From NCBI RefSeq assembly GCF_021869535.1, contig NW_026262581.1:15934001-15998000 (forward strand): a DNA stretch of 64,000 nt, written 5' to 3'. The translations under genes and the position numbers were made by a program. Under the pieces are notes generated by a model, which saw only the letters and a program-made list of their open reading frames with translations, did no database searches and had not been told where the DNA came from. This DNA is from Mytilus californianus (lineage: Eukaryota). The number at the start of each line of letters is the position of its first letter. Positions within the stretch are counted from its first letter, which is position 1. Shown in pieces: positions 1-64,000 of the stretch.

Positions 1-1107
1 TTGATGTGTAAAACATCAGCAGATTCACGTGTGCGCTTGACTCTAAATTATCGCAATAACATAGCAAGGTCATCACCTGACATGACCGGTCAATCCTTGG
101 CCTGACACATATCTGCATTGGATATATTTAGAATTTTCAATATATGTTTATAATGAAAAACCCTAATTTAAGCAAACTTGACTAAAATCTTGGTGGCCAG
201 TTTTTTTTTTAAAGTTAACTATCTGCCTTTGACAGAAAACTTTCAAGTGAAACCAAATCAAATACTGTTATAATTGCTTGGCGAAATTGCTTGCATCAAG
301 TTGACCATGCTGAGACGAATGTATGGAATTTAGTTATAGAAAATTTAATTTGAATCAACAGTATTTGCAGATTTTTATGTTAAGTATAGTGAGTTTTGGT
401 TGAGTTATGAGTATTATTATTTTTGGAAGAAAAAAATATGTAGAAAGCAATAATGGGACAAAGCAGGCTGGGTTGGTGTGGGCTGCTTTTATGGTAATTC
501 AAGTTACTTTTTATGCATCTTCTTCCACCTCAGAGCAATCAGCTCTTTGATTTTTTGCCTGTATAAAGAGCGTACGGGAGTTTAAACAAAAACACCTATT
601 TAACCCAAACAAAATTCTCAATGAGTTTATTGTAATGTTATTTATTGACATTTAAACATTTCCCTACAGTATGTAATGAAACAAATTATATTTGGAAAAG
701 ACATGCATTGATTGGTTACTGGTTCCTTTTTGTGTAATGGCCTATATTTCATGCTGATTCAGAAAAAAGACCAAGCTGAAAGTGTACACATTTCCTGTTT
801 CCATTCTCAATTCTGCTCCTATATATATATATACATTTAACATGTTCCAGCCAGTGAAAAGAGTAGGGTGCTAATCTAAAAAAAGGCATCTAAGTTTGTA
901 AATGGAAGTGAAAAGGGTCAGTTTATGGTGAACAACAATTTAAAGAAATAAAAACGATATTGATTCTGCATATGGTTTGTTAAAGCTACATTTCTAAACA
1001 TGCTCATTAATCTGACAGATGATTTATTTTGCTTTTTATATAAGTATTCCAATAAGGGAATAACTACCAATATGTTATATTTGAATGGATTAATTGTGTC
1101 TTTATAG

Positions 1108-3007: not shown

Positions 3008-4498
3008 ATGAAAATTAGAATTTACAAAAATATTTACTGCTTGGCAATTGCCACACCTCTCACATATATATTCAACAGAATGATAGATACTGATATATAT
3101 CCTTCATTACTGAAAAATGCTAAGGTAACACCAGATTACAAAGATGGTGACAAGGTTTTAGCAACAAATTACAGACCAATATCTGTTCTTCCATCTCTAT
3201 CAAAAGTATTAGAAAGGCATGTCTCAAATAACATGTACAAGTACTTGTCTAAATTTAAACTTTTACATCCTACACAATCAGGTTTCAGGCCACATCATTC
3301 TTGTCAAACTGCACTTATTGATATCATTGACAAATGGCTGCAAGAAATGAATGATGGTAATTTAAACTTAGCAATACTGTTGGACTTCAAAAAAGCATTT
3401 GATCTTGTAGATCATGACATTCTTTGCTTAAAGCTTGCTATTTACGGATTCAGTGAGTCTGCAGTAGGTTTTTTCAGGTCATACCTAAGTAATAGAACAC
3501 AGCAAGTAAACATTTGCAATGTCAATTCTGATAAAAAAGATGTGAAATTTGGTGTCCCCCAAGGATCTATACTAGGTCCTCTACTATTTGTCTTATTTAT
3601 AAATGACCTTCCCCTTTGCATTAAAAATTGTAAAACAGACTTATATGCTGATGATACTACTCTCCATAAATCCGGGAAAAACATAGAAAATTTACATGAT
3701 GATGTACAAGAAGATTTATGCAGAGTTGAAGAATGGTGCAAAATTAATAATATGTTCATCAATACCAAAAAAACAAAATGTTTGGTTACTGGAACAAGTC
3801 AGAAGTTATCAACTCAATCTTTTCAACCAAATTTATTAATAAATTCAGAAACACTACAAAATTCATCATGTGAAAAATTATTAGGTGTTAAAATTGACAG
3901 CACACTTAGCTGGACAAATCAAATTGATCAAATTTGTGCTAGCATTTCATCAAGAATATACCTTCTTTCTAAATTAAAGAAATTTTTAGATATTAATGCC
4001 AGGAAAGCATACTATAATGGGTATATTCTGCCGCTCATTGATTACTGCTGTATTGTTTGGGGAGAATGTAAAAATGAAGGGATGGTAAGAATATTAAAAC
4101 TTCAAAAAAGAGCAGCAAGATTAATTCTTGATGCAGACCCTTTATCCCCATCAGCCCCCTTATTTAAAGAACTTGGATGGATGACAGTTGAAAACAGAAT
4201 CAAATACCACAAATATTTACTGCTACATAAATGTATGCGGAAAGAAGCACCACAGTACCTACTTCAAAAGTTTCAACTTATATCTGTTAATAATCCTTAT
4301 GCTTTAAGGGGTGTCACTCAAGGTAATTTGATAGTCCCTAAGCCAAAAACTGAACAGTTTAAAAAATCTTTTGCTTATTCTGGATCAGTTTTATGGAACG
4401 GACTACCATATGAAATGCGTAAAGTGCAAAACACTTTTTCTTTTAAACAAATTATAAAACAATACTTGAGACAGTCCCAATATTCAGTCTTGAAATGA
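3008..4498 (+). CDS. Reverse transcriptase ORF of a CR1-group (L2/Crack/Daphne-like) non-LTR retrotransposon, no endonuclease
   Basis: 496-aa uninterrupted ORF with NYRPISVL, QSGFR, LDFKKAFD, GVPQGSILGPLLF, YADD, LLGV motifs and a CR1-group C-terminus (SFAYSGSVLWNGLP). Confidence 0.95.
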   Translation: MKIRIYKNIYCLAIATPLTYIFNRMIDTDIYPSLLKNAKVTPDYKDGDKVLATNYRPISVLPSLSKVLERHVSNNMYKYLSKFKLLHPTQSGFRPHHSCQTALIDIIDKWLQEMNDGNLNLAILLDFKKAFDLVDHDILCLKLAIYGFSESAVGFFRSYLSNRTQQVNICNVNSDKKDVKFGVPQGSILGPLLFVLFINDLPLCIKNCKTDLYADDTTLHKSGKNIENLHDDVQEDLCRVEEWCKINNMFINTKKTKCLVTGTSQKLSTQSFQPNLLINSETLQNSSCEKLLGVKIDSTLSWTNQIDQICASISSRIYLLSKLKKFLDINARKAYYNGYILPLIDYCCIVWGECKNEGMVRILKLQKRAARLILDADPLSPSAPLFKELGWMTVENRIKYHKYLLLHKCMRKEAPQYLLQKFQLISVNNPYALRGVTQGNLIVPKPKTEQFKKSFAYSGSVLWNGLPYEMRKVQNTFSFKQIIKQYLRQSQYSVLK

Positions 4499-10051: not shown

Positions 10052-12244
10052 CAGGGGCGGATCCAGGGGGGGGGCACCATGAAACCAAAATTAAATATTT
10101 GTTTAGAGATGTATATATGTGTGAGTGGGTGGTAATGGTGGGGGTTGTCAGATCATGGTTTCTATATTTCTATATCTTTTAATTTTTCACTATTTCACTC
10201 TATTCTTTAATCTTCTGCCAATTAATCTCTATTACATTCGTCCTAAACATGCATTATATATTTGCCACTGGGCATTAAGCAACCAACAATCAATCAATCT
10301 ATTCTTTATATTTCATCACCTCTTTATTCTGTTATCTCTTTTTTGGTCCCGCTTCTAATATAACTTTTTTGCCTCTTATTCTCTTATCTGTCAACCCTAT
10401 TCATATCCTCATAAATGGTGACCCATTCATAGCAAGATTTTTATGCCCCCGCCGTAGCGGAGGGGGCATTAAGTTTTACCCTTGTCCGTCTGTACGTACG
10501 TACGTACGTACGTCCGTACGTCCCGAAATTGGTTTCCGTTCTCTAACTTGAGTTTGCCTCAACCAAATGTTATGAAACTTATACACAATGCTTATTACCA
10601 CAAAACACAGATCAAGTTTGAATTTTGGTGGCGTCACTTTAACCGATCTAGAGTTATGCCCCTTTATAAAAGGAAATATTGCAAAATTTTTAGATTCCGT
10701 TCTCTAACTTAAGTTTGCCTCAACCAAATGTTATGAAACTTTTACACAATGCTTATTACCACAAAACACAGATCAAGTTTGAATTTTGGTGCTGTCATTT
10801 TAACGGATCTAGAGTTATGCCCCTTTATAAAAGGAAAAATTGCAAAATTTTTATTATCTTCTAAATATCAAGTTTATATAATATATTTTTAAAATTGGAG
10901 TTATCTTCCTTTGACCATGATTATAGTTGAATCAACTACAATCAATGCTTTTTACAATGCAATGTTTAATTTTGACTTCCACTGATAAAACACAGATCAA
11001 GTTGAATTTGGGTAGTGTCACTTTAACCATTATTGAGTTATACCCCTTTATAAATAGAAAGATTGCAAAATTTTTTAGTTTCCATTCTGTAACTGAAGTT
11101 TTCCCCAGCCAAACATTATGAAACCTATACACAATATTCATTACCACAAAACTCAGTAAGGATCAAGTACAATTTTTTTGTTTCAGTTCTCTAACTTGAG
11201 TTTGCCTCAACCAAATGTTATGAAACTTATACACAATGCTTATTACTACATAATAAAGATTAAGTACGAAATTAGGTGGCAACACTTTTACCATTCTAGA
11301 GTTATGTCCCTTTATAAACATAAAAATTGCTGAATTTTTTAGTTTGTCTCAACCAAATGTTGTAAAACTTATACACAACCGTTCTAGAGTTATGCGTGTT
11401 TACAAATAGAAAAATTGCTGAATTTTTAGTTTCTGTTCTCTACTTAAGTTAGCCTCAACCAAATGTTATGAGACTTACACACAATGCTTATTACCACAAA
11501 ACTCAGATCAAGTTCAAATTTGGGTAGCGTCACTTTTACCGTTCTTCAGTTATGTCCCTTTATAACTATATGATATGCAAGCGGGGGCATCATCTGTGTC
11601 CACATGTGGACACTATCCACATTTATTTTTTAAACAAATTATTGGTTTCCTTTGAAAATAAGGGGGAAAAGTAATATGACATTTAGTTTTTGAAAAAAAT
11701 CGTGTATGATATTGAAAAACACAGTTTCGAAAAAAAAAAATTCACAAGAAATGGTAATGTGAGTATTTTGTTATGAAGACCTGGGACATAGTATAATAGT
11801 CCCAGTGAAGTCATATCCCATATATCGATACCAACATGCTTGGCACTAAACATCTATTTGTACATATTTTTTTAGTTAGTAATTTTTTTCCTGATCAGAA
11901 GATTTCACCTGTTAATCAATCGTAATCACTGATTTTGTATTAGAAACCAATAAAAATATTCGTACTATTCCAATCAACATGTACATGTAGTTTACATAAA
12001 ATCTTTTGAAAAGAGATATTACACACAGGTGTCAATATTTACAAACATACCGATAAGTTGTCATAAATCAAGCATGTTGAAGTTGGGGTTAATTAACAGC
12101 CAGTTTAAGAAGTCAAATCAAGCTGTGATTAATTTCCGCTCAAGATAAGTAGATTCAGTAGCAATAAAAGTATGTAAGAAATTTTTTTGGTGACCTGGAC
12201 TGGGGGCACATCCCCCCTGTGCCCCCCTGGTAAATCCCCCACTG
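10052..12244. mobile_element. Possible TIR element (CAGGGG...CCACTG ends) carrying a nested HINE
   Basis: GC-rich imperfect inverted ends CAGGGGCGGATCCAGGGGGG / CCCCCCTGGTAAATCCCCCACTG, both flanked by ATGTT. Confidence 0.4.
10438..11625 (+). mobile_element. HINE (DINE-1/pearl-like) with ~160-bp internal tandem array
   Basis: subTIR ATGCCCCCGC (10443) / GCGGGGGCAT (11581), (CGTA)n microsatellite about 10494-10520, about 6 core repeats (10536, 10697...), perfect 18-bp 3' palindrome GTGTCCACATGTGGACAC 11596-11613. Confidence 0.85.
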
Positions 12245-16689: not shown

Positions 16690-17000
16690 TTTATCCACCC
16701 ACACTCCTCCTAAATCAGTGACCCAATTTTTATTCACCCACACTCCTCCTAAATCAGTGACCCAATTTTTATCCACCCACACTCCTCCTAAATCAGTGAC
16801 CCAATTTTTACCCACCAACACTCCTACTAAATCAGTGATCCAATTTTTATCCACCCACATTCCTCTTAAATTAGTCACCCTATTTTATCCATTCTTGCTC
16901 CTCCTAAATCAGTGACCCAATTTTTATCTACCCACACTCCTCCTAAATCAGCGACCCAATTTTTATCTACCCACACTCCTCCTAAATCAGTGACCCAATT
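16690..17000. repeat. 39-bp minisatellite, 8 copies
   Basis: TAAATCAG anchor recurs at 16711, 16750, 16789, 16828, 16867, 16905, 16944, 16983. Confidence 0.93.
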
Positions 17001-18645
17001 TCAATGAATCTTCAGTACCTGATTGTATTGTGTACCTCAAATTTTATTTGTTAGATTATGATGCTTTTTGGGGTTTCACAGGACGAATCATACATTTTGC
17101 CATGTCTATTGAAATAGGGAAGTGGGTGTTTGAATTTGTAATTTTTTTTTAAAGTTTTTATGGAAGTTCTAGGTACAACTCTTATAAAGTACCAAGACAA
17201 CTAAGTATATCATGTCAAAATAAGATGTAATAGGTTTTATACTTGATAAGGGGTATATATTTAGGTATAGTGGATTCATTTATTTTGGTGGATACCAATT
17301 TTCATAGATTGAGGGAAAATTGTGTCTACCTGGATATTTGATTTGAAGGATTTGCCTAAGTCTGCTTAGAAGCCTATAGACAATCTATAATTCACAGAAT
17401 ATTTAAATTTGTGGTTAACCTACACCCATGAAATACGAAAATTAGTATCCTGTGAAAAATGAATCCACAGTATCATTCATAGAACCAGTCTTGTGAATAA
17501 AATTGATATGTCCTGTCAACATTGTTTAATTAGATTTGTGAAGATATTATATTATTGTTTGTTTGTACAGCTCTGTAGATATCTTAAAAGAAAATGTATA
17601 TAATCATTAATTTTATTTGTAAATTGAAACTAATACATTTTATTGTACATACTTATATCAGTAAACATTTAAAAAATTGTGTATTGTTTATTTTGATATA
17701 TAGATTTCGATTGACATAATTTGGGCAAGAGTTATTTTCCTTTTGTTGCCATGTTGGAAGTCAATGTGCACAAATGTCTTCATAAATCAGCCATATTCAA
17801 CTTTTTAAACTGACTGCTAGACTTTAGAAAAGGTTGTTTTCTAAACAATTAAGCCTTGCTTAATTCATCACTACAGTCTAGTAAGGATCTTTAATCAAGA
17901 CTTGTTTGTACCACATGTTTAAATTTGGTTTGTCAAATAAGAAAATCAGCCAGTTACACCTTAAACATGGGCCCAAGGGAAATAACTCAGACTCAAATTA
18001 CATCATAATGAAACCTATCTATAGACATTTCTGAAAAAAAACAGACCCATTGAAGGAGTAAGGATGTGTTGTTGATAGACATTAGACACTTATCTTAGAC
18101 AGTACTCAGAAATAACCATGTTTCAATGAACAATGGTTGTTATTTATATACATTACCTGAACTATCAACAGATGGTCTTTCAAAATGATCTCAACACTTC
18201 AAATTCTCCATTTGTGGGCAATAGAATAAAACTGTATAGTAAGATTATGGAAGTGGCAATAACCCTATAAACCATTCACTTTCAGTGTTTTTCTATCAAT
18301 TTGAAAATATATTGTGCCCAAGTTCTGATCATTGTCTTAAAATGTCTTACAGGAGTTTGTATAAAGAAACTAAAGGAACAAATATTGAAATGAGATTAGA
18401 AAAAATGTCAAACTAGCTAAAAAAAAGGACTGAATCACAATAGTAATGATGCTTTGATTTTGTCTGTATAAGTGTCATATTTAATATTGACAACTTTATT
18501 AGGGAACCATATCCTTCTTTATAAGATAATCTGGAATTATCTGTTTTTTTTTTAATGATAAGTTTCTTAAGTAATATTGGGACTTGACTAAATAATCCTT
18601 TTGTAGAAATGTTTCATGATTTTCTATCAGTCAGAAATATAAAAT

Positions 18646-22060: not shown

Positions 22061-23166
22061 AAACAAGAGTGCACATGCTAAAATGTCTCGCCTGCTTTAC
22101 TGACCATTAACTTTATGTTGAAAGTCTAAAAGATAAAGGTTTTACTACAAGTATCACATAAACTTAACATTTTTAAAGATCCATGACAATGAGGTCAAGG
22201 TCAGATAAATCCTGTCGGACAGACATGTACACCTTACAATTATTTCTAACACTAAATATAGTTAACCTATTGCATATGGTAATTGAAAAACAGACGAAAA
22301 CACAAAAACTTAACATTGACCAATGAAGCATGAAAATGAGGTCAAGATCAGATCATACCTGCAAGACAGACATGTACACCTTACAATTATTCCATACACA
22401 AAATATAGCTGGCCTTTTGCTATAAGTATTTGAAAAACAGACTAAAACACAAAAACTTAACATCAACCAATGAACCTTGAAAATGAGGTCAAGGTCAGAA
22501 GATACCGACATGTACACCTTACAATCATTCCCCACACCAAATATAGTTAATATATTGCTTACAGTACTTGAAAAACAGACCAAAACACAGAAACTTAACA
22601 TTGACCAATGAAAATGAGAGCAAGGTCAGATGATACCGGCTAGACCGACATGTACACCTTACAATCATTCCATACACCAAATATAGTTGATCTATTGTGT
22701 ACAGTATTTGAAAACAGACAAAAACACAAAAAAAAACCTTAACTTCGACCAATGAACCAAGAAAATGAGGTCAAGGTCAGATGAAACTAGACTGACATGT
22801 ACCCCTTACAATCATTCCATACACCACACATAGTTTACCTACTGCTAATAGTATCTGAGAACCCATATGCCACACACTGTTATCCTTTTACTCATAATAA
22901 GTGAGAAATTCACTTGACAAAACAACAATAACTTTATTTCAAGTAGTTGCTGAACCATGAAAATGAGGCCAAGGACAATGGACATATGACAGACAGAAAT
23001 ATTTTCACATAAGGTATCTGCATACAAGGTATGAATCATCTAGCTCTTCTACGTTCTGAATTATAAAGCTTTATACAAATAGTTTACACCGCAGCCGCCA
23101 CCGCCGCCGTCGGATAGTAATCCCTATGTCTTGCATACTGCAACTTTCATCGCAGACAAGACGAAA
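22061..23166 (-). mobile_element. HINE with ~147-bp internal tandem array
   Basis: GAGGTCAAGGTCAGA-type anchor at 22191, 22338, 22485, ~22616, 22767; (CCG)n microsatellite near 23090-23110; HINE-like ends AAACAAGAGTGCAC and CTGCAAC..CGCAG. Confidence 0.8.
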
Positions 23167-23609
23167 CCAAACCGTAAAAATAAACATCATAATAAAATGA
23201 AACGTCATATCGATTATTATGGGAAAATATTGCATACTAGTTATTTTATAAACTGATTTTTATTTTCAATATATGTATCTTTTTCAATTATTTGTTTATT
23301 ACTTTTTTAGATTGCATTCAATAGTTAAAAAAAAAGGAAAAATAATTTAACTGCGAACGAAGACATTTTGATGATTTGATTTATTGCTAGTTGACCAGGG
23401 AATGACTAAAGCTCACATTGTTACAGACTGATATCGGTTGGTTATTTTTGTCGTTGAGTTGCTGTTTCAGTACCCCACTCTCCTTTTTATTCAAATGTTG
23501 GGGTAATGCATGTTAGTTCTAAATATGTCACTATAGCGAGGTAAAATATATTCCTCAAACTTTGCATATAAACTTATTAATGGCTAATTAAATTCAGAAA
23601 ATAACATGA

Positions 23610-24097
23610 ATATATAAATAGGAAGCTCAGATAGACAAGCTGAACACATGCAGAACATTCTCGCAGGTCAATATATAAATAGGAAGCTCAGATAGACAAA
23701 CTGAACACATGCAGAACATTCCCGCAGGTCAATATATAAATAGGAAGCTCAGATAGACAAACTGAACACATGCAGAACATTCCCGCAGGTCAATATATAA
23801 ATAAGAAGATCAGATAGACAAGCTGAACACATACAGAACATTCCCACAGGTCAATATATAAATAGGAAGCTCAGATAGACAAACTGAACACATACAGAAC
23901 ATTCCCACAGGTCAATATATAAATAGGAAGCTCAGATAGACAAACTGAACACATGCAGAACATTCCCGCAGGTCAATATATAAATAAGAAGATCAGATAG
24001 ACAAGCTGAACACATACAGAACATTCCCACAGGTCAATATATAAATAGGAAGCTCAGATAGACAAGCTGAACACATGCAGAACATTCCCGCAGGTCA
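23610..24097. repeat. 61-bp minisatellite, 8 near-identical copies
   Basis: ATATATAAATAGGAAGCTCAGATAGACAA(G/A)CTGAACACAT(G/A)CAGAACATTCCC(G/A)CAGGTCA at 61-bp period. Confidence 0.96.
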
Positions 24098-25103
24098 ATG
24101 AACAGGACAGTAGCCGGCTGAATTTAGATGATACATCGTAACAATATGATCAATAAGAAAAAGTTTTGCATTATGCAACCATTTTACTTTTTATCGATTG
24201 AATCGCATAACCCTTTAAAATGACTCTTCTTGTCTTTGAGAACTCGTTCATATTAACTCATGGTTTTCGTGCTATCTAGTTGAAATAAACTTTGCTTGTT
24301 TCAGTTAGATTTTCTGTACTTGTGTGTATCGATCAATTTTTACTCGTTTCCGGTTGTGTAACTATTAAATTTTGATGTGAAATATCATATTGGAACCATC
24401 AAAGAGTCATTTATGTATCAATTTTTAATCTAAACATAAAGGACTTCGATGCTGGAAATTCATTTTTATAAGTTTTTCGGAGTCTTGAGCTTTAACAAAT
24501 GATGAAAAATGAAATAGAAAAAAATGACTTAAAGTAAACATTTATTTGTCTATATTCAAAATGAGAAACGATCTTTTTGTTTTATGAAATAATGATTCAA
24601 TATCAATGGTGAGACATCTAAGATAAAAAAAATCGTAACTATTGTAGTAGAATTTATTCATATTTTATTATTCTACTCATGAATGAAACGTGCCCATAAA
24701 ACGGAACATCGACAACAGAAAAATTGGTGACGTTATATCGATTTATAAATATTTAGTCACGTTCTAAGTACAAATTAAACAAAGATGCAAGATACATTAT
24801 AATACAAGTCTGAATCAAATATATATTTATTTAAAACAATACATTGAAATAATTACAATTGGTTTTACTCGGATTACTTCAAATCAATATCTCAATTTCC
24901 CACATCAAATCATTGTGCGGGGACAGCTGTCGCCAATATATGATAACGAACACCACTGTATAGAGTGGCTATATATATGTGTTTTATCGACCATTCGAAA
25001 AATGGAAAAGACAATTTAAAATCAAAGTAATACTGTGCATACTATTTGGAATAATTGTATTATAAAATGTATGACAAAATATGGTAGTGAAGTTGAATGA
25101 AGG

Positions 25104-40268: not shown

Positions 40269-40705
40269 CAATTCTGATGACAGACATGAGTCGTTTGAAG
40301 CACACACTAAACACAGTTTTTGTCATCTTTGATTTAATGGTATCAGCAACACCTATCCGGATTTTACACATGTTTATTCCAGTCATGTTAGGATCTATTT
40401 ATTCGCTTTTTAACGCCTTCTACTTCCTGAATGACGGAACAATTTTAGAAGGAAGACACTACGCCTACAACGTTCTTAACTGGGATCATCCTCAAGAGGC
40501 TATCATCACATGTCTTTTGTGTATGGTTGAATCCGTGCTTAGTCAAATTATTTTGTACGAATTGTATAAATTAAGGCGTTGGATACATTCAAAAACATTC
40601 TTTGGACAAGAAGGTGATCTTCCTTATTCTGAAATGCAAAGCATAATGACAGAAGCTCCGAAGTATTCAACTATGGGAAAAGGTCAGCAACCAGACTTTT
40701 CTTGA
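40269..40705 (+). CDS. rost: Rolling-stone-like, last exon
   Basis: tttcag|CA...; HTLNTVFVIFDLMVSATPIRILH and YNVLNWDHP motifs of rost/Far-17a-like proteins; four exons total 918 nt = 305 aa plus stop. Confidence 0.92.
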
Positions 40706-49047: not shown

Positions 49048-49277
49048 AGGATTCCATGTACATGTATATATGTGTATTGCAAGGATTCCATAAATATATG
49101 TGTATCGCGAGGATTTCATGTATATATGTGTATCGCGAGGATGCCATGTTTATATGCGTATCGCGAGGATTCCATGTATATATGTGTATCGCAAGGATTC
49201 CATGTATATATGTGTATCGCGAGGATTCCATGTATATATGTGTATCGCGAGGATTCCATGTATATATGTGTATCGCG
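49048..49277. repeat. 28-bp minisatellite, 8 copies
   Basis: AGGATTCCATGTATATATGTGTATCGCG at 49048 (34-bp variant), 49082, 49110, 49138, 49166, 49194, 49222, 49250. Confidence 0.94.
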
Positions 49278-51569
49278 AATGAATTATATTGTCATTATTG
49301 TCTTGTAGCTTGATTTAACCAGGAGTTTCCCAGCAGTTGCCACAGATGGAGCAGGTTTTTCTTACAATTTTATGAAACAATTTTGTTGTTCCCAAATTTT
49401 CAAAAGGTTGATGAGACCTCTATTTCTCTATTTCATTGCTCTAATTTTTGGCAGGTTTGGATGAAGTCCAATTTAAACCGTTTATAGTATGGCGATGTCG
49501 GACGGGTAAAGAGGGTACCTAATTTGTGTAATCAACTCCTCCTACAGTTTTCCGCCCAGATACCTGAAATTTCACAGAAAGGTTGCACATATGTTATTGA
49601 AGTTGTGCACCTGTTATTATGGAAATGTTTGAGGAATTTTTACTTTTCATATTCTAAATATTTAAATGTTCAGTATAGAGCATTCGCCATTGTTTAACTT
49701 GAGAAACATTTCTGCACAAACCGGTCATTTAAATCTTTGCTATATTTTTCCTGCTAATTAAAATGTGGTATTTTTCTGATATAAAGACGTACCATTGTCT
49801 TTCATTTAAAATGTTCTATTGTCTATCTCAATGCTGTAACCCTTATACATACTTTGGTCCTCAACATTTGAGTTAACTTGATTGTAATCTAATATTTGAG
49901 AGACACAATTTTTGTTTGTGTATAATTTATTAATTTCTAAGGTATCACTTATACTTGAACATTACATTATACAATATAATATATTTCTTAACGAAGTTGA
50001 CAATTACAATGAACATTTCATTTCAAAAATACGTGAAATTAGTATCATACTTTCATTTTAGGGATATTTAAGTTTTTCAGCATACCAAAATTAACATCTC
50101 ACAACCTCAAGCCTCATACACGGTACAATGTATTTTGCGTACTTATGACAAACATTTCATACTTGAACACATTTTCTAACACAAAGCGTTTATGTTCATA
50201 TCTCAAATAAATGGTATATACATAGGGTATATGGATATTTCGTTTCTACACATCACTTATCCAGTGGTTATTAGGAATATACAAAATTTGGACGGTTGTG
50301 ATCTATATTTCATGCTCGGGCAAAGGACAAGCTTCTCTTTTGTCTAATTATGGCCTTGAATTTCAACATACAATGCAATAAAAAAAATTCAAAATGGCCA
50401 AAATTGGTTTCTTAAATAAATCTGTTTAAAAGGCCTTGATGCTAAGTAATACGAATATCTTCTTAAGTGTACATTATGGACTCCGCACAGATGATTTTGT
50501 GCATTGTTTGGACCTCAAAGCTGAAGAGAGACCTTGGCCTCTACGATTCAAATGTTTTTAAACCGAATTGTGCAAAGGTATATATCGAAGCCCTAGACAT
50601 TTAGATTTTCTGATCATGGGGATGCGGCCAAAGTTATCTATGCTAAAAACTATTATAAATCATAAAAAGTAAGACCAAGACGTTACAATGCAAATAATGC
50701 ATCATTTAGGGGTCATAAATTCGTAATTTACAATGTAAAATACAAAATAGAAGTTATATTGTTTGTCTCTCGTAATATATCACATTGATCTTGCAAGCTC
50801 GTGTAATATGATATACTACTCCGGAAAATATTCCTCAATATTAGTACAACAATCTTATATCATACTGCATAGATACCATTTGTCTGTGAAGTTTACGTTT
50901 TCTATAACAAGATTAGTTAATGAATGGCAATATAAACTGAACAGAATTTCAAATTATTTTTTTGTCATGCAACTGCTCAAAAATTTGTTAGCTTATCGAT
51001 TCAAAATTTCTCAAGCAGATATTTTAATTAAATCTCAACAATTTCCAGAAATCAAATTTGAAATTTAAATACTCGCATTTCGTTCTTCAAAAAGTTCGTA
51101 TTCAAAAGTTTGATAGAAATGGAAATTAAGTTTCGCATCCATCAGCGAAATTATTTTACGACAAATCAAACTCTACGACAAAATATTAGTTGCATTTTTT
51201 CAAAATAAAGAGAACTCTTTGAGTTTCGATTTCACAGACATTTCAAAGAGTTACATCGATCCTAATTATCTTTCTCAGGTATAACTTAGGGAAACAATTT
51301 CAAACATGTAACGTTTTATGTTGCATATTCCTCCTTTTGAAGTTATCATGCAATTGAAACGGAAAAACTAAACTAGGATTCCGACTCATTTCTTAGAAAC
51401 AAGAGTTTTTGATGTGTTTTACAAACAATAAATTTTTATGGAAAAAAAATCATAGTTACATTTTGATACACATTTAAAGTACAAACTGTACTATAACATA
51501 AAGACTATATGGTCATTCACTTGGATCTTGTAGTACAAAATTTGAAATTTGTATATTAAGAAATTCATT

Positions 51570-56535: not shown

Positions 56536-57412
56536 GTAAGGCTTATGTATCCAGGGAAACGATTTAATCTTGAAATTTCTAAATCGTGTTGTATAATACT
56601 GCAATACTATATTTTGGATTTCACGCTTTTAATTCGAATATTTTTAAACTAAGACTTCTGTACCGTTTGCAATTTTCACATAAAAATAAAAGAAAGAAAA
56701 AGTTAATGACAAAGTGAGATAGATAAATACCAAACAAAACAAACAATTATTCATTCTATACGTATATTGACTATAGGGAAAATGAAATGAGAGTGGAAAG
56801 TAGTTAAATAAAGGAGTTCATAACATCAGAAAATATTTTCTAGATGAGTAAAACTAGATATGGGATATACATCATGAGACACCAATCTAACGACACAACC
56901 AAACCAATTTAAGCCATCTAGCTATCAACATATACAATAATATTTATACAATATGTCAAGCTCTTAATCTACCACAGTTTAGTTTGAATTATTGAACAAA
57001 TTAATCTGAGAGTATCACAGCTCTCCATCGTGGTGGATGACAACTATTTTTTTTAGAAATCTACCCTCCATCTTTTAATTTGGATCAATGAAATAAAAAA
57101 ATACATAGAAGAACCAGTAAAAACCAGTTAAAACTATTGTCTTTTTTTTTTAAATATGTCTATGATCTGTACTTGCTGAAATGGAAACATCTACACACAT
57201 ATACCCTAAATAACTTGTTATTCAGCCCTGACAGTAGACATGCTTACCTGTGATGCCTTATGTATTTCGAATGACAAAAACACAAAAAGGGTGCATATTT
57301 TATTTGTATTTAAGGAATGACTGTAATATTTTTTCTGTCTATTCGAAATAACATAAAAAATGTTTTATAAAAAGACCATAAACCCACTTATTCATGGTAT
57401 GGTATCAATATT

Positions 57413-57520
57413 TCTGACCTGACACTACGTACTTTTTATTGCTTAATTCTTTAGAATTTAATATGCAATGTTTCGGGTTCTTTCGGGAATAATCCCAGGT
57501 AAACCCTCATCAGAGGCCGA
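57413..57520 (-). ncRNA. Type I hammerhead ribozyme, copy 1
   Basis: Minus strand: stem I GGCCT/AGGTC, CTGATGA (57507-57513), stem II GGGTT/AACCC with inner GGGA-TTAT-TCCC hairpin, GAAA (57471-57474), stem III ACATTGC/GTAGTGT, GTC cleavage triplet (57421-57423). Confidence 0.85.
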
Positions 57521-57949
57521 CCTTTATATATTTATTTTATATCTAGTATTGTAGATAGATGTGTGTCTGTTTCATAACAGTTTTTTTCAAATTTACTACA
57601 CGTGCATATAGGTCTACGTTGTAGCTAGTCTTTTTACAGACTAAAGAAACTGACCAAGTAGATCAGCACCTTTGGTTAATTATTCATATATATAATGAAA
57701 AGACTTATTGTCTTTATTGTCTTTATTCTCGTAATCTAATCTATCATAAATCTACACGAGATCTAATAGAGATAGTAGTTATCAGTGCTATACTGTTGAA
57801 TTTACACTAGACTGTCGTGTATGTTTTAACACCTATTTGATAATATACAAATGTCTCCATGTTTAACAATTGAAGAGGTTTGTGTAGATACCATGTCGGT
57901 TCTATGCATGAATATAACAGGAACCATTCAGTTTTCTCTTGTACGTGAT

Positions 57950-58410
57950 CTCTTGAAATAAATCGGCATCACGTCTTTTTACATCTGTTTCACAGTATAA
58001 TGATTGTATACTAAAGCCTCCCGTGGTGGGGTATTGTGAATCAATGTCTTCGGCTTAATGATTAATTATCATGTTGCCAATATTCTTATTGTTTTTTAAA
58101 CCAATATCAGGTTTGGATTTAGATAGTTTTTTTATTTATTATTTTGGCAATCGGATCTTTCCGAATTATATACCAAATTTTGTTATTACCGTGTTAAGAT
58201 ATTCAAGATATTTCTGCCACTTGTTTTCTAATATTTGGTTTCTTTCGAAGTTGCTGTCTGCATCTATGCTAACTTAGCCTAACTGTTTTGTTAGGGAGAA
58301 ATCTGCAAGATATTTACACTTTAGACCGTATTTAAACGATTATCTTATAAATACATGTTGCTATTGTTTCTAAGAATTCTCGTACCTTCAGAAGGAATGA
58401 AAACAATGTA
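57950..58410 (-). pseudogene. Decayed Penelope-like RT thumb/linker remnant
   Basis: In PLE order on minus strand, across stops and frameshifts: FIPSEGTRILRNNSN (58402-58357), IWYIIRKDPIAK (58178-58143), KPDIGLKNNKNIGNM (58114-58070), RCKKT*CRFI (about 57986-57958). Confidence 0.5.
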
Positions 58411-58606
58411 CTATTTCAAATAATTGTTCACTTTGTTCACCTTCTTCATTAAATATATTAAATCCATCAATTCTCATTCTTTAGTGGAATTTAATATTAT
58501 TTTCGTAAGATATTTCTCTGTTTTATGTCTATAATTATGGTTAAATATAGCAATATCGGATATTTCCAGGGAGGCAACTCTGCCCATTGAAACGCCAACG
58601 ATCTGT

Positions 58607-61160
58607 TGCTAGTACAACAGTATAACTTTCGTTGTTCATTGACAATCATATTTATTTGTTATTAGTTTCCATGTAACCTTCAACGGCTTGACATAATAAT
58701 TATTATCGATATTAGTTGCTTAACGTCCTGTTGCCAATATTTCATGTATGTTTAGGACTGTGATATAGTGATGACATAAGGTTGTTTACTAGTATAATAG
58801 TATAACTTCCATAGGTCGTTGACAATCATATTAGTTGTAGTTAGTTTCCATGCTACCTTCTAAGGTTTGACATGATACAGCGATAAATTAACGATTTTTG
58901 GTTGCTTAGCATCCAGTGGCAAATATTTCATGTATGTTTAGGACTATGATATAGTGATGACATAAGGTTGTTTGCTAGTATAATAGTACAACTTCCATAG
59001 TTCATTGACAATCATATTAGTTTGTAGTAGGTTTCCATGCTACCTTCTAAGGTTTGGCATGATACAGCGATAGATTAAAGATTGTTGGTTGCTTAGCATC
59101 CAGTGGCAAATATTCCATGTATGTTTAGGACTATGATATAGTGATGACATAAGGTTGTTTGCTAGTATAATAGTAGAACTTCCATAGTTCATTGACAATC
59201 ATATTAGTTTGTAGTTAGATTTCATGATACCTTCTAAGGTTTGACATGATACAGCATCCAGTGGCAAATATTCCATGTATGTTTAGGACTATGATATAGT
59301 GATGACATAAGGTTGCTTGCTAGTATAATAGTATAACTTCCATAGTTCATTGACAATCATATTCGTTTGTAGTTAGTTTCCATGCTACCTTCTAAGGTTT
59401 GACATGATATAGCGATAAATTAACGATAGTTGGTTGCTTAGCATCCAGTGGCAAATATTTCATGTATGTTTAGGACTATGATATAGTGATGACATAAGGT
59501 TGTTTGCTAGTATAATAGTACAACTTCCATAGTTCATTGACAATCATATTAGTTTGTAGTAAGTTTCCATGCTACCTTCTAAGGTTTGGCATGATACAGC
59601 GATAGATTAAAGATTGTTGGTTGCTTAGCATCCAGTGGCAAATATTTCATGTATGTTTAGGACTATGATATAGTGATGACATAAGGTTGTTTGCTAGTAT
59701 AATAGTATAACTTCCATAGTTCATTGACAATCACATTAGTTTGTAGTTAATTTTCATGCTACCTTCTAAGGTTTGACATGAAACAGTGATGAATTGAAGA
59801 TTTGTTGGTTGCTTAGCATCCAGTGGCAAATATTTCATGTATGTTTAGAACTATGATACATATAGTGGTGGAACAAGGATGTTTGCTAGTATAATAGTAT
59901 AACTTCCATAGTTTATTGACAATCATATTAGTTGTAGTTAGTTTCCATGCTACCTTCTAAGGTTTGGCATGATACAGCGATAGATTAAAGATTGTTGGTT
60001 GCTTAGCATCCAGTGGCAAATATTTCATGTATGTTTAGGACTATGATATAGTGATGACATAAGGTTGTTTGCTAGTATAATAGTACAACTTCCATAGTTC
60101 ATTGACAATCATATTAGTTTGTAGTAAGTTTCCATGCTACCTTCTAAGGTTTGGCATGATACAGCGATAGATTAAAGATTGTTGGTTGCTTAGCATCCAG
60201 TGGCAAATATTTCATGTATGTTTAGGACTATGATATAGTGATGACATAAGGTTGTTTGCTAGTATAATAGTATAACTTCCATAGTTCATTGACAATCATA
60301 TTAGTTTGTAGTTAATTTTCATGCTACCTTCTAAGGTTTGACATGAAACAGTGATGAATTGAAGATTTGTAGGTTGCTTAGCATCCAGTGGCAAATATTT
60401 CATGTATGTTTAGAACTATGATACATATAGTGGTGGAACAAGGATGTTTGCTAGTATAATAGTATAACTTCCATAGTTTATTGACAATCATATTAGTTTG
60501 TAGTTAATTTTCATGCTACTTTCTAAGGTTTGACATGAAACAGTGATGAATTGAAGATTTGTTGGTTGCTTAGCATCCAGTGGCAAATATTTCATGTATG
60601 TTTAGGACTATGATATAGTGATGACATAAGGTTGTTTGCTAGTATAATAGTACAACTTCCATAGTTCATTGACAATCATATTAGTTTGTAGTTAGTTTTC
60701 ATGCTAACTTCTAAGGTTTGACATGATACAGCGATGAATTGAAGATTTCTTGGTTGCTTAGCATCCAGTGACAAATATTTCATGTACGTTTATGACTATG
60801 ATATAGTGATGACATAAGGTTGTTTGCAAGTATAATATTATAACTCCCATAGTTCATTGACAATCATACTAGTTTGTAGTTAGTTTCCATGCTACCTTCT
60901 GAGGTTTGACATGATACAGCGATGAATTAAAGATTTGTTGGTTGCTTAGCATCCAGTGGCAAATATTTCATGTATGTTTAGAACTATGATACATATAGTT
61001 GCGAAACAAGGTTGTTTGCTAGTATAATAGTATAACTTCCCTAGTTCATTGACAATCATATCAGTTTGTAATTATTTTCCATTTTACCTTCTTAGGTTTT
61101 ACATAGTGATGAATTATTGATGACATAAGGTTGTTTGCTAGTATAATAGTATAACTTCCA
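58607..61160. repeat. ~187-bp satellite array, about 13.5 monomers
   Basis: TCC(A/T)GT anchor at 58725, 58911, 59098, 59256, 59443, 59630, 59818, 60008, 60195, 60383, 60575, 60763, 60951. Confidence 0.96.
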
Positions 61161-61189
61161 TGTTTCAGTCAAATATGAGTCGGTATCAT

Positions 61190-61193
<4 letters not shown>

Positions 61194-61227
<34 letters not shown>
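61194..61227. repeat. (AT)n microsatellite
   Basis: Read directly. Confidence 0.95.
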
Positions 61228-61230
<3 letters not shown>

Positions 61231-61663
61231 TGTCTTGTATGTTTTATACATACATTTTGTTTCTGTATTATTTTATTTTTATTTTTATTCATTACTTTAT
61301 AATTTCAGGTATATCTTTGTTTCGTATGTAAATAGTGATAGCTATATAGTAGATCTATGTTATTTACATAATTAGTTACATGTATATTGTATAAGATGTA
61401 CAGTGTTATATACATAAAGAAAGATGTACAGTATTATATACATATAGAATTGTATACTATTACATTGTGCATATAGTATAGTGTCGTACGTAGTTTCTCG
61501 ATCAGAAATACGTCGTACCATAGCATTAATAAGGATCAAAAATTCTATAATTAAATAGAACCTGATTCAACGGGTGAGATCACAACTAGTGAAATATTCA
61601 CCGTATCAAATTGTTTTATAAAAAGACCATAAACCCACTTATTCATGGTATGGTATCAATATT

Positions 61664-61771
61664 TCTGACCTGACACTACGTACTTTTTATTGCTTAATTC
61701 TTTAGAATTTAATATGCAATGTTTCGGGTTCTTTCGGGAGTATTCCCAGGTAAACCCTCATCAGAGGCCGA
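61664..61771 (-). ncRNA. Type I hammerhead ribozyme, copy 2
   Basis: Identical to copy 1 except two substitutions in the stem II terminal loop (TTAT to ATAC); CTGATGA at 61758-61764, GTC at 61672-61674. Confidence 0.85.
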
Positions 61772-62829
61772 CCTTTAGCTATTTATTTCGTATCTAGTAT
61801 CATAGATAGATGTGTGTCTGTTTCATAACAGTTTTTTATTTAATTTATTAACTACACGTGCATATAGGTCTACGTTGTAGCTAGTCTTTTTACAGACTAA
61901 AGAAACTGACCAAGTAGATCAGCACCTTTGGTTAATTATTCATATATATAATGGAAAGACTTATTGTCTTTATTCTCGTAATCTAATCTATCATAAATCT
62001 ACACGAGATCTAATAGTTAGTAGTTATCAGTGCTATACTGTTGAATTCACACTAGACTGCCGTGTATGTTTTAACACCTATTTGATAATATACCAATGTC
62101 TCCATGTTTAACAATTGAAGAGGTTTGTGTAGATACCATGTCGGGTCTATGCATGAATATAACAGGAACCATTCTGTTTTCCCTTGTACGTGATCTCTTG
62201 AAATAAATCGGCATCACGTCTTTTTACATCTGTTTCACAGTATAATGATTGTATACTAAAGCCTCCCGTGGTGGGGTATTGTGAATCAATGTCTTTGGCT
62301 TAATGATTAATTGTCATGTTGCCAATATTCTTATTGTTTTTTAAACCAATATCTGGTTTGGATTTAGATAGTTTTTTTTTTTTTTGGCAATCGGATCTTT
62401 CCGAATTATATACCAAATTTTGTTATTACCGTGTTAAGATAATCAAGATATTTCTGCCACTTGTTTTCTAATATTTGGTTTCTTTCGAAGTTGCTGTCTG
62501 CATCTATGCTAACTCAGCCTAACTGTATTTGTTAGGGAGGAATCCGCAAGACATTTACACTTTAGACCGTATAATACATGTTGCTATTGATTCTAAGAAT
62601 TCTCGTACCTTCAGAAGGAATGAAAACAATGTACTATTTCAAATAGTTGTTCACTTTGTTCACCTTCTTCATTAAATATATGAAACCCATCAATTCTCAT
62701 TCTTTAGTGGAATTTAATATTATTTTCGTAGGGTATTTCTCTGTTTTATGTCTATAATTATGGTTAAATATAGCAATATCAGATATTTCCAGGGAGGCAA
62801 CTCTGCCCATTGAAACGCCAACGATCTGT

Positions 62830-64000
62830 TGCTAGTATAATAGTATTACTTTCGTTATTCATTGACAATCATATTTATTTGTTATTAGTTTCCATGTAAC
62901 CTTCAACGGCTTGACATACTAATTATTATCGATATTAGTTGCTTAACGTCCTGTTGCCAATATTTCATGTATGTTTAGGACTGTGATATAGTGATGACAT
63001 AAGGTTGTTTGCTAGTATAATAGTATAACTTCCATAGTTCGTTGACAATCATATTAGTTGTAGTTAGTTTCCATGCTACCTTCTAAGGTTTGACATGATA
63101 CAGCGATAAATTAACGATTTTTGGTTGCTTAGCATTCAGTGGCAAATATTTCATGTATGTTAAGGAATATGATATAGTGATGACATAAGGTTGTTTGCTA
63201 GTATAATAGTATAACTTCCATAGTTCATTGACAATCATATTAATTTGTAGTTAGTTTCCATGCTACCTTGTAAGGTTTGACATGATATAGCGATAGATTA
63301 AAGATTGTTGGTTGCTAAGCATCTAGTGGCAAATATTTCATGTATGTTTAGGACTATGATATAGTGATGACATAAGGTTGTTTGCTAGTATAATAGTACA
63401 ATTTCCATAGTTCATTGACAATCATATTAGTTTGTAGTAAGTTTCCATGCTACCTTCTAAGGTTTGGCATGATACAGCGATAGATTAAAGATTGTTGGTT
63501 GCTTAGCCTCCAGTGGCAAATATTTCATGTATGTTGAGGACTATGATACAGTGATGACATAAGGTTGTTTGCTAGTATAATAGTATAACTTCCATAGTTC
63601 ATTGACAATCATATTAGTTTGTAGTTAGTTTCCATGCTACCTTCTAAGGTTTGACACGATACAGCGATGAATTATTGATTGTGGTTACTTAAAGTCCAGT
63701 GACAAATATTTCATGTATGTTTTAGACGATGATATATATAGTGATAACATAAGGTTGTTTGCTAGTATAATAGTATAACTTCCATAGTTCATTGACAATC
63801 ATATTAGTTTGTAGTTAGTTTTCATGATACCTTCTAAGGTTTGACATGATATAGCATCCAGTGGCAAATATACCATGTATGTTTAGGACTATGATATAGT
63901 GATGACATAAGGTTGCTTGCTAGTATAATAGTATAACTTCCATAGTTCATTGACAATCATATTAGTTTGTAGTTAGTTTTCATGATACCTTCTAAGGTTT
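62830..64000. repeat. ~187-bp satellite array, copy 2 (incomplete)
   Basis: Anchors at 62948, 63134, 63321, 63508, 63694, 63856. Confidence 0.96.

Follow-up and report, generated by a model that had tools for sequence, protein, structure and literature searches.

A putative family of satellite-carrying, hammerhead-bearing retrotransposons in a Mytilus-type mussel genome

We analyzed a 64,000-nt stretch of the Mytilus californianus genome (hereafter the window), in which a tandem unit with a hammerhead ribozyme motif starts at position 57361 and is repeated up to the window's end. With a probability of roughly 0.8, we read this unit as a member of a young, non-coding, non-autonomous retrotransposon family with ~200 copies in this Mytilus-type mussel, and the array as a single 15.8-kb insertion. 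Evidence for mobility by an RNA route comes from one fixed end combined with one-sided truncation, from whole arrays flanked by target-site duplications (29 bp in one case, 41 bp in another), and from a sharp excess of breakpoints at the predicted ribozyme cut. The element is thus supported as a cargo carrier related to the small retrozymes of animals but unusually large for one. A sequence-only reading of the window had proposed a possible giant retrozyme that could spread satellite DNA through RNA: the copies, fixed end, duplications and breakpoints favor this proposal, and the RNA route is the part to which they point indirectly.

The 4251-bp-offset repeat on which that reading was built is real, with homology starting sharply at 57361 and 61612, running through the unique part into the satellite, and amounting to 95.2% identity between units 1 and 2 over the whole unit. 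On the minus strand, each unit consists of a 452-nt spacer, a 187-bp satellite array of variable length, a unique part, the hammerhead, and a 60-nt tail (Table 1); the order of satellite, unique segment, hammerhead and tail had been given correctly, the unique part being 1.24 kb long and made of ~950 nt of unique sequence plus a conserved 3′ module of ~285 nt. The predicted cuts at both GUC sites would yield an RNA from 61671 to 57421, and these coordinates agree with the 4251 nt first claimed. The unit had also been described as bounded by hammerheads, a view to be corrected at the DNA level, where the end lies 60 nt downstream of the cleavage site. Whether the spacer belongs to the element had been left as a question. 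It was full-length in 40 scored loci; 34 of these continue into the next unit for ≥150 nt, 2 for 90–101 nt, and at least 3 for exactly 60 nt. Judged from these junctions, the 452-bp spacer is part of the unit. The sequence is AT-rich (31% GC), and between 57300 and 61700 neither strand holds an ORF of ≥72 aa or one for a reverse transcriptase or GIY-YIG endonuclease, making the element at most a non-autonomous dependant of a Penelope-like element.

Table 1 Features of the insertion (positions in the window unless stated otherwise)
Feature	Position	Strand	Remarks
Left target-site duplication copy, 29 bp	57332..57360	.	brackets whole 15.8-kb insertion
Unit 1 unique segment (U), subfamily A, 1.24 kb	57361..58605	-	no ORF of ≥72 aa
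60-nt 3′ tail, unit 1	57361..57420	-	from first base after predicted cut (57420) to invariant 3′ terminus (57361)
3′ module, ~285 nt (tail, hammerhead, ~115 nt)	57361..57645	-	also alone as "mini" units
Type I hammerhead motif, unit 1	57416..57518	-	C17 at 57421; complete core and helices
Unit 1 satellite array, 187-bp	58606..61159	-	~13.7 monomers including a 158-bp variant
Spacer (SP), 452 bp	61160..61611	-	(AT)17 run at 61194-61227; joins satellite to next unit's terminus
Unit 2 unique segment, subfamily B	61612..62828	-	tail 61612-61671, hammerhead 61667-61769, C17 at 61672
Unit 2 satellite array	62829..64000	-	cut by window end; unit runs on to G000:C1:15999913
Right target-site duplication copy	L031:9186-9214 (G000:C1:16007186-16007214), outside window		exact 29-bp direct repeat

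Next, we evaluated the hammerhead motif. A narrower gapped pattern missed it because stem III is long, and a scripted descriptor was used instead, which found only the hammerheads of units 1 and 2 across the 64 kb and no match in 20 shuffled sequences. Both window copies carry the full core (C3 U4 G5 A6 N7 G8 A9, G12 A13 A14, A15.1-U16.1, H17) surrounded by three helices, helix I being open-ended, and the minimum free energy fold recovers helices II and III. In unit 1, the core consists of CUGAUGA (57513-57507), GAA (57474-57472), the A15.1-U16.1 pair and GUC with C17 at 57421, while helix I has 5 bp (57518-57514 with 57420-57416), helix II 6 bp (57506-57501 with 57480-57475), and helix III 7 bp (57471-57465 with 57428-57422). 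Rfam covariance models returned no hammerhead, either over the whole window at the gathering threshold or over 57200-62000 at E ≤ 10, where only chance snoRNA and miRNA-like matches appeared. Stems II and III carry long insertions (32 and 49 nt), which are a likely cause; the negative result does not disprove a hammerhead, since the core and helices are complete.

The core is kept in 37 of 39 family copies, the exceptions being one with a G8>A change and one without C3. Between the old and the young subfamily, the hammerhead differs by two base changes only, both in the distal hairpin loop of stem II (in an alignment of four near-identical rows). Divergence from the old subfamily is 2–3% in the first 170 nt and rises to 18–26% beyond position 285, so that between old subfamilies nothing is better conserved than tail and hammerhead (~97% in the diverged subfamily). 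Among copies of the young family, several other segments are conserved at least as well as the hammerhead. Given its stable 7-bp helix III, the predicted ribozyme should be able to act alone, i.e., without a neighboring ribozyme, which suggests an adaptation to a setting where the nearest neighbor is kilobases away.

Genome-wide, the terminal 26-mer occurs 205 times compared to 0 in the control (≤2 mismatches), and a hammerhead 26-mer 175 times compared to 0 in controls; some hammerhead copies lack the terminal 26-mer, e.g., in C99 and at C1:52.9 Mb. A search with the 1.24-kb part gave 206 candidate places on many contigs, at least 51 of them scored matches. Family copies are spread over ≥20 contigs; their flanks are unrelated, and they have one sharp end in common. 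The checks proposed along with the sequence-only reading concerned the number of copies in the genome, whether the satellite always accompanies them, and their arrangement in tandem. All three were positive, giving ~205 termini on many contigs, a satellite adjoining the unique part at 30 of 30 loci examined, and tandem arrays of 2–7 units at several loci. Head-to-head arrays with small terminus scraps occur as well. Dispersed copies and target-site duplications exclude allelic collapse or a local duplication of old transposon debris. Unit periods range from 3006 to 4871 bp across the family, with 8 to 24 monomers per satellite array, and units within an array are often more alike than units of different arrays (C1:14.67 Mb, C88).

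All copies share the sharp end corresponding to 57361, and in short copies it is the opposite side that is missing: all retain position 1 and break off at 28, 55, 60, 90, 101, 282, 552, 845 or ~1030, which on the hammerhead strand amounts to 5′ truncation. "Mini" units (positions 1-282/285) stand head-to-tail ahead of full copies at at least 4 loci, and the bare ~285-nt module is also found in tandem. The termini read show no poly(A) or simple-repeat 3′ tail. We found no autonomous element that shares this 3′ end: the terminal 26-mer numbers ~205, not exceeding the roughly 206–211 candidate places of the family, and shows no surplus for an autonomous partner.

The window holds the 3′-most 1.55 units of the 15.8-kb insertion, which extends 8 kb past the window end and comprises 3.7 units in the order A-B-A-B, units 3 and 4 coming after unit 2. 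The array is flanked by an exact 29-bp direct repeat, whose left copy directly adjoins the element terminus and whose right copy adjoins the array's far end; a perfect target-site duplication around the entire array implies one insertion. The target was one arm of a palindromic MITE-like repeat, the other arm of which provides the uninterrupted sequence. Identity is 99.3–99.4% for units 1/3 and 2/4 but only 95% for adjacent units, and the subfamily of unit 2 clusters with an array 1.3 Mb away. By these comparisons, units 1 and 2 are different subfamilies within one insertion rather than fresh duplicates of each other, although the A-B-A-B order could alternatively have arisen by later local duplication of an A-B dimer. 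At the far end of the array, the terminus restarts three times (positions 1-9, 1-11 and 1-28), and these scraps are abortive restarts. Elsewhere, a 41-bp target-site duplication surrounds a three-unit composite (L021), and direct duplications of 1007 bp and 2080 bp surround two head-to-head double arrays. A long duplication at C88 was not counted as a target-site duplication because its flank is itself a 1.3-kb tandem repeat.

If the hammerhead were active, its cut might leave a mark on insertion junctions. From coordinate-only junction and pattern searches of the genome, homology ends after tail position 60 in 15 places, not all of them demonstrably independent events, compared to 2 after position 59 and 4 after position 61. 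We infer that this excess is a scar left in the genome by ribozyme cleavage in vivo. In vivo cleavage, an RNA intermediate and the type of enzyme are likewise what we infer from sequence patterns. To look for transcripts, we compared 61100-62950 with three contig sets and the raw reads of a single RNA-seq run. A 6% sample of the run (paired-end Illumina cDNA; selection method not on record) yielded 39 reads, on both strands and all in the unique part, a depth too low for ends, strand or circles. None of the 39 falls on the satellite or spacer, and there is no pile-up at the cleavage site. Abundant or circular RNA was not seen among them either, tandem DNA hiding circle junctions. One loose read end at 61666 with 11 foreign letters was dropped because the joined 26-mer is absent from the genome. 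Transcript contigs stop at the element terminus and continue with other flanks.

These patterns can be accommodated by a mechanism in which transcription would pass through several units of an array and the hammerhead would cut the RNA, so that new 5′ ends would lie at tail position 60. Reverse transcription would rely on an enzyme provided in trans, which the insertion architecture suggests to be Penelope-like; starting from the invariant terminus (57361) at a nick in the target, it would synthesize cDNA towards the RNA 5′ end. Copying could then end early (5′ truncation), run off at the ribozyme-made 5′ end, or enter another unit, either on circularized or multimeric RNA or by a jump to the start site of another template. 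Read-through into further units would give one integration with one target-site duplication and several head-to-tail units, and an entire satellite array would thereby be moved to another locus. A more specific version is possible but doubtful, namely that hammerhead cuts at both ends release a 3–5-kb RNA whose ends are ligated to form a circle that the reverse transcriptase copies repeatedly. If so, the circle would be several times longer than the ribozyme-made retroelement circles found in the literature, each retrotransposition would plant a multi-kb array with 187-bp satellite and seed satellite DNA across chromosomes, and the "tail" scraps at Penelope-like insertions would be run-off copies of ribozyme-cut RNA ends.

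Several features of the family recall hominid SVA, a non-autonomous few-kb composite with an internal tandem-repeat block, 5′ truncation and target-site duplications that can seed tandem repeats at new loci, has a poly(A) end, and depends on LINE-1 for its mobility. The family described here differs in its lack of poly(A), its ribozyme, and its tandem and inverted multi-unit arrays. Nevertheless, we considered that a SINE- or SVA-like composite might be moved by a LINE reverse transcriptase, with the hammerhead an inherited passenger devoid of any role in the life cycle. In LINE-dependent composites, too, insertions are 5′-truncated, target-site duplications vary, and a variable array of tandem repeats lies inside; kb-scale duplications have been documented at de novo LINE insertions (PMC9977147), a LINE-type reverse transcriptase ORF lies in the window at 3008-4498, and the lack of special hammerhead conservation within the young family would be expected of a passenger. 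Yet no poly(A) or simple-repeat tail occurs at the termini read, tandem and head-to-head inverted copies with terminus scraps follow a Penelope-type pattern, breakpoints pile up exactly at the predicted ribozyme cut, and tail plus hammerhead are the part best conserved between old subfamilies, all of which makes a LINE-driven origin unlikely. Counting against our own reading are the missing Rfam hammerhead, the unremarkable conservation of the hammerhead among young copies, the yield of 39 reads only, the failure to find an autonomous partner, and duplications that exceed those of rotifer Penelope elements in length.

Explanations that dispense with RNA fare worse. A Helentron/HINE rolling-circle DNA transposon would have its left end at 57361, the 187-bp repeats at its center, and a right end with a subterminal hairpin inside the spacer, where a 13-nt palindrome ~10 nt before the spacer end is a candidate; one fixed and one variable end and tandem copies would fit as well. 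Helitron-type insertion is not known to make a target-site duplication, whereas perfect duplications of 29 and 41 bp flank insertions of this family. Moreover, the spacer end is not a free terminus, most copies continuing into the next unit and a few stopping at the ribozyme site, neither TC...CTRR ends nor insertion sites between T and T are seen, and a conserved hammerhead with a breakpoint peak at its cut has no role in a DNA mechanism. We hence consider such a transposon very improbable, even though Helentron-derived elements carry satellite arrays in oysters (PMC7492417). Still less credible is a higher-order satellite or local segmental duplication that is not mobile and spread by unequal crossing-over and ectopic recombination. 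The variation in monomer number is what unequal exchange predicts, and the frequent similarity of units within arrays and the A-B dimer repeated here at 99.3% identity would fit as well. A spread over ≥20 contigs, with flanks that are unrelated and a single sharp end, speaks against it. Target-site duplications also bracket whole arrays, the other arm of the palindromic target is uninterrupted here, and adjacent units in this insertion are less alike than units on other chromosomes.

To our knowledge, retrozymes and hammerhead-bearing pseudo-LTRs (pLTRs) are known only as small units. Like metazoan non-LTR retrozymes, the family is non-coding and AT-rich, is built of head-to-tail units each with a type I hammerhead, and occupies many dispersed loci as monomers and multimers (PMC7229834; 10.64898/2026.07.22.740005). 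For retrozymes, dependence on a Penelope-like enzyme and multi-unit copies made by more-than-unit reverse transcription have been proposed (PMC7229834; 10.64898/2026.07.22.740005). However, the units are much larger here (3.0–4.9 kb compared to 150–1000 nt in the literature; 350–390 nt in mussel retrozymes and consensus lengths of 51–972 bp in a 35-genome survey, PMC7229834; 10.64898/2026.07.22.740005), consist mostly of cargo (187-bp satellite array, ~1 kb of unique DNA and the 452-bp spacer), and have a stable helix III of 7 bp instead of the usual 1–2 bp. Abundant circular RNA characterizes retrozymes, while this element has been read from the genome and 39 reads.

Penelope-like elements resemble the family in having a hammerhead towards the 3′ end, partial tandems, a neighboring inverted copy truncated at its 5′ end, and short "tail" scraps of the terminus (PMC8557442; PMC3846280), along with variable target-site duplications. 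Their pLTRs are able to move unrelated captured cargo in trans (PMC3846280), and circle-templated, more-than-unit copying has been proposed both for them and for retrozymes (PMC4209133; PMC7761336). They differ from the family in encoding a reverse transcriptase/GIY-YIG ORF, in having a minimal, dimer-dependent hammerhead (PMC4209133) rather than a full three-helix motif, and in duplications of 8–10 bp in rotifers (PMC3846280) as opposed to 29–41 bp and 1–2 kb here. The copying mode and the role of the ribozyme in transposition in vivo are still argued for retrozymes and pseudo-LTRs, and in a young family insertion scars are directly readable: a fixed start 60 nt past the cut, run-off ends, restarts, and a duplication around several units provide testable constraints on the copying mechanism.

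A ~285-nt ribozyme module carrying >3 kb of cargo including a satellite array would also represent an RNA-mediated dispersal route in bivalves beside the Helentron route. HINEs are similarly bivalve mobile elements with a central satellite-like array and unique ends that scatter short satellite arrays (PMC7492417). They are rolling-circle DNA elements, while the target-site duplications, 5′ truncation and ribozyme-site breakpoints found here point to an RNA route. Separately, the satellite monomer showed one match only to a SINE 3′ end (47 nt, 81% identity), located at 10225-10271 of the window.

The repeat proposed from the sequence alone, with an offset of 4251 bp running from 57361 to the window end, was borne out, with an abrupt onset of homology at both 57361 and 61612. 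Along the plus strand, each unit follows a four-part order, i.e., unique segment (U, numbered from the element terminus), satellite array, spacer (SP), then the next unit; the element has a GC content of 31%, similar to the remainder of the window, and no ORF ≥72 aa was detected in the repeat unit. Our genome search recovered full-length SP at 40 scored loci, and cross-matching with a junction search found it joined to ≥150 nt of the following U in 34 of these 40, to 90–101 nt in 2, and to exactly 60 nt in at least 3; SP belongs to the unit. Elsewhere in the window, the 187-bp satellite monomer had only one match (10225–10271, 47 nt, 81% identity).

The minus strand of unit 1 carries a complete type I hammerhead motif. 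A scripted descriptor identified exactly two sites in the 64-kb window, with C17 at 57421 and 61672, and none in 20 shuffles. The Rfam models did not report the hammerhead even at E ≤ 10, probably because of long stem insertions. The 4251-nt RNA (61671 to 57421) put forward in the sequence-only reading matches the product predicted if both sites are cut. Helix III is longer here (7 bp) than in dimer-dependent animal hammerheads, where it usually spans 1–2 bp (PMC4209133), which would be sensible since the neighboring ribozyme is 4 kb distant.

Features of the repeat unit, its insertion sites, and other tandem arrays (window coordinates unless marked as U positions or as fetched loci outside the window, L; G000:C, contigs of the same genome; divergence is against an older subfamily)
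Feature	Position	Strand	Details
Unique segment (U)	from 57361 (position 1)		1.24 kb
Satellite array	58606-61159		187-bp monomers, one 158-bp variant
Spacer (SP)	61160-61611		452 bp, AT-rich
Hammerhead core CUGAUGA	57513-57507	minus	
Helix II		minus	6 bp, with distal hairpin
Hammerhead core GAA	57474-57472	minus	
Helix III		minus	7 bp, loop 35 nt
GUC cleavage triplet	C17 at 57421	minus	
Helix I		minus	5 bp
Tail	U 1-60		divergence 2-3%
Hammerhead region	U 61-170		divergence 2.7%; only two changes inside motif, both in one loop
U interval	U 171-285		divergence about 11%
Remainder of U	U beyond 285		divergence 18-26%, plus indels
29-bp direct repeat	57332-57360; L031:9186-9214		perfect
Palindromic target	57316-57360; L031:9186-9300		MITE-like inverted repeat, ~50 bp per arm
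C144 double array	L033-L036 (G000:C144:411001-451000)		duplication 1007 bp, 99.3% identity
C1:14.67 Mb double array	L037-L040 (G000:C1:14666001-14706000)		duplication 2080 bp, 99.2% identity
Tandem array, 39-bp x8	16690-17001		unrelated to element
Tandem array, 147-bp x4.7	22181-22858		unrelated to element
Tandem array, 61-bp x8	23609-24099		unrelated to element
Tandem array, 28-bp x7.8	49061-49278		unrelated to element

Across the genome (1.65 Gb, 175 contigs), U had 206 candidate places, of which at least 51 gave scored matches, spread over many contigs at 93–99% identity; exact pattern searches counted the terminal 26-mer 205 times and the hammerhead 26-mer 175 times (controls, 0 for both). 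The expected constant association with the satellite was upheld, the array directly following U in 30 of 30 fetched loci. All copies begin at the identical first base amid unrelated flanks, and short copies, which always retain position 1, end at 28, 55, 60, 90, 101, ~282, 552, 845, or ~1030. Read on the hammerhead strand, this pattern is a fixed 3′ end combined with 5′ truncation, as is characteristic of target-primed reverse transcription. Further exact hammerhead 26-mers, recorded as coordinates only and with no terminal 26-mer among the matches listed there, lie at G000:C99:127295833-127300203, C99:117877297-117881137, C1:52892976, C1:100825621, and C1:123250772, and may be relatives with a different 3′ end or truncated copies.

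At the window locus, the array continues past the window end to a total of four U segments, the last unit being truncated within the satellite. A direct repeat of 29 bp brackets the array, one copy bordering the first terminus and the second copy closing the far end, where three abortive terminus restarts (positions 1–9, 1–11, and 1–28) precede the duplicated target. This target is one arm of a palindrome; the other arm is uninterrupted and provides an internal empty-site control with which the 29-bp duplication can be compared. As judged from these boundaries, the whole array is one insertion. Full-length identity reaches 99.36% for units 1 and 3, and identity is 99.28% for units 2 and 4, compared to only ~95% between neighboring units. 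A tree built from 39 copies places units 2 and 4 with an array 1.3 Mb away, and units 1 and 3 with copies from other chromosomes. Given these identities and groupings, the two window copies represent different subfamilies inside a single A-B-A-B insertion and did not arise as a fresh local duplicate.

Target-site duplications were also found around other insertions. At one fetched locus (L021), a 41-bp duplication encloses one complete U, 116 nt of satellite, and a pair of “mini” units with internal deletions. Two head-to-head inverted double arrays, on contigs C144 and C1, are each flanked by a direct duplication of unique target DNA. The latter are unusually long target-site duplications, kb-scale examples being on record for other non-LTR elements (PMC9977147). 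On contig C88 (L041-L043, G000:C88:139338001-139368000), element copies lie within host DNA that is tandemly repeated every ~1.3 kb, and every unit is accompanied by its own flank copy, such that repeated insertion and host-repeat duplication are indistinguishable; since the flank is itself a tandem repeat, this locus was left out of the target-site duplication count. Tandem units, adjacent inverted 5′-truncated copies, and short terminal scraps are typical of Penelope-like architecture (PMC8557442; PMC3846280), and the mussel family displays all three.

If cleaved RNA served as template, cDNA run-off would be expected at U position 60, i.e., the first base past the cut. We searched for the exact 25-mer ending at a given U position followed by any base but the expected one, and found breakpoints after position 60 at 15 places (not necessarily independent events), compared to 4 places one base further, 3 of which form a single local tandem with a junction ambiguous by microhomology, and 2 places one base earlier. 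One position-60 breakpoint was read directly, at C88, and two further ones account for spacer copies without a long junction. At two loci on contig C13, successive termini lie 63 nt apart, which suggests run-off, a few extra bases, and a restart at position 1. We take the position-60 excess as indirect, sequence-based evidence that the ribozyme may cut in vivo.

Among copies of the young family, conservation of the hammerhead does not exceed that of several other stretches. Against the older subfamily (82% identity across positions 1–845), divergence is lowest across the tail and the hammerhead region, and the first ~285 nt of U are also found alone, as tandem “mini” units. This part looks like a retrozyme-sized module, with the remainder of the unit as its putative cargo, similar to rotifer Penelope pseudo-LTRs (pLTRs), which reportedly move captured DNA (PMC3846280).

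These observations are best read as a hammerhead retroelement that is non-autonomous and propagates through target-primed reverse transcription. Its copying would begin at one fixed point, 60 nt downstream of the cut, and single events would lay down multi-unit arrays, either on a circular or multimeric RNA template or through jumps between templates. The published retrozyme model leads from circles to multimeric cDNA (PMC7761336; PMC4209133), and the restarts at position 1 are compatible with template jumping at least as well as with circles. A composite element dependent on a LINE is a rival, without supporting poly(A), however, and with the peak of breakpoints at the cut site left unexplained. 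Both the target-site duplications and the lack of a free end at the spacer contradict a Helentron-type element, and a non-mobile higher-order satellite is at odds with the dispersal of the copies along with the duplications. Animal retrozyme units generally span 150–1000 nt, those of mussels 350–390 nt (PMC7229834), and a survey of 35 genomes reported consensus lengths of 51–972 bp and tied retrozymes to Penelope pLTRs (10.64898/2026.07.22.740005), whereas the units here reach 3.0–4.9 kb, mostly satellite and unique cargo. The hammerhead retroelement proposed here appears to work like a retrozyme or a pLTR-dependent element, but its units exceed the size of known retrozymes.

A single raw RNA-seq run, of which 6% was read, provided 39 reads, all inside U and in both orientations, with none on spacer or satellite edges and no pile-ups of read ends. 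Contig sets of uncertain type contained U, and their contigs ended at the terminus with other flanks. Together, reads and contigs indicate low-level transcription at most, and RNA-seq is silent on circles, whose junctions are hidden by tandem DNA and which poly(A) selection, if used, would remove. Three RNA reads (raw run X21) match the tail at 61616–61666 and continue into 11 letters that, joined to the tail, are absent from the assembly.

Two further ORFs lie elsewhere in the window. On the plus strand, a 496-aa ORF (3008–4498) carries an RVT_1 reverse-transcriptase domain (E 6e-30), has R2 and LINE-1 proteins as its closest solved relatives, and looks like a LINE fragment; no link was seen between this ORF and the element, 53 kb apart. 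A 142-aa ORF on the same strand (40277–40705) matches the Pfam “rolling stone” (Rost) family (E 2e-15), and is probably a host-gene exon.
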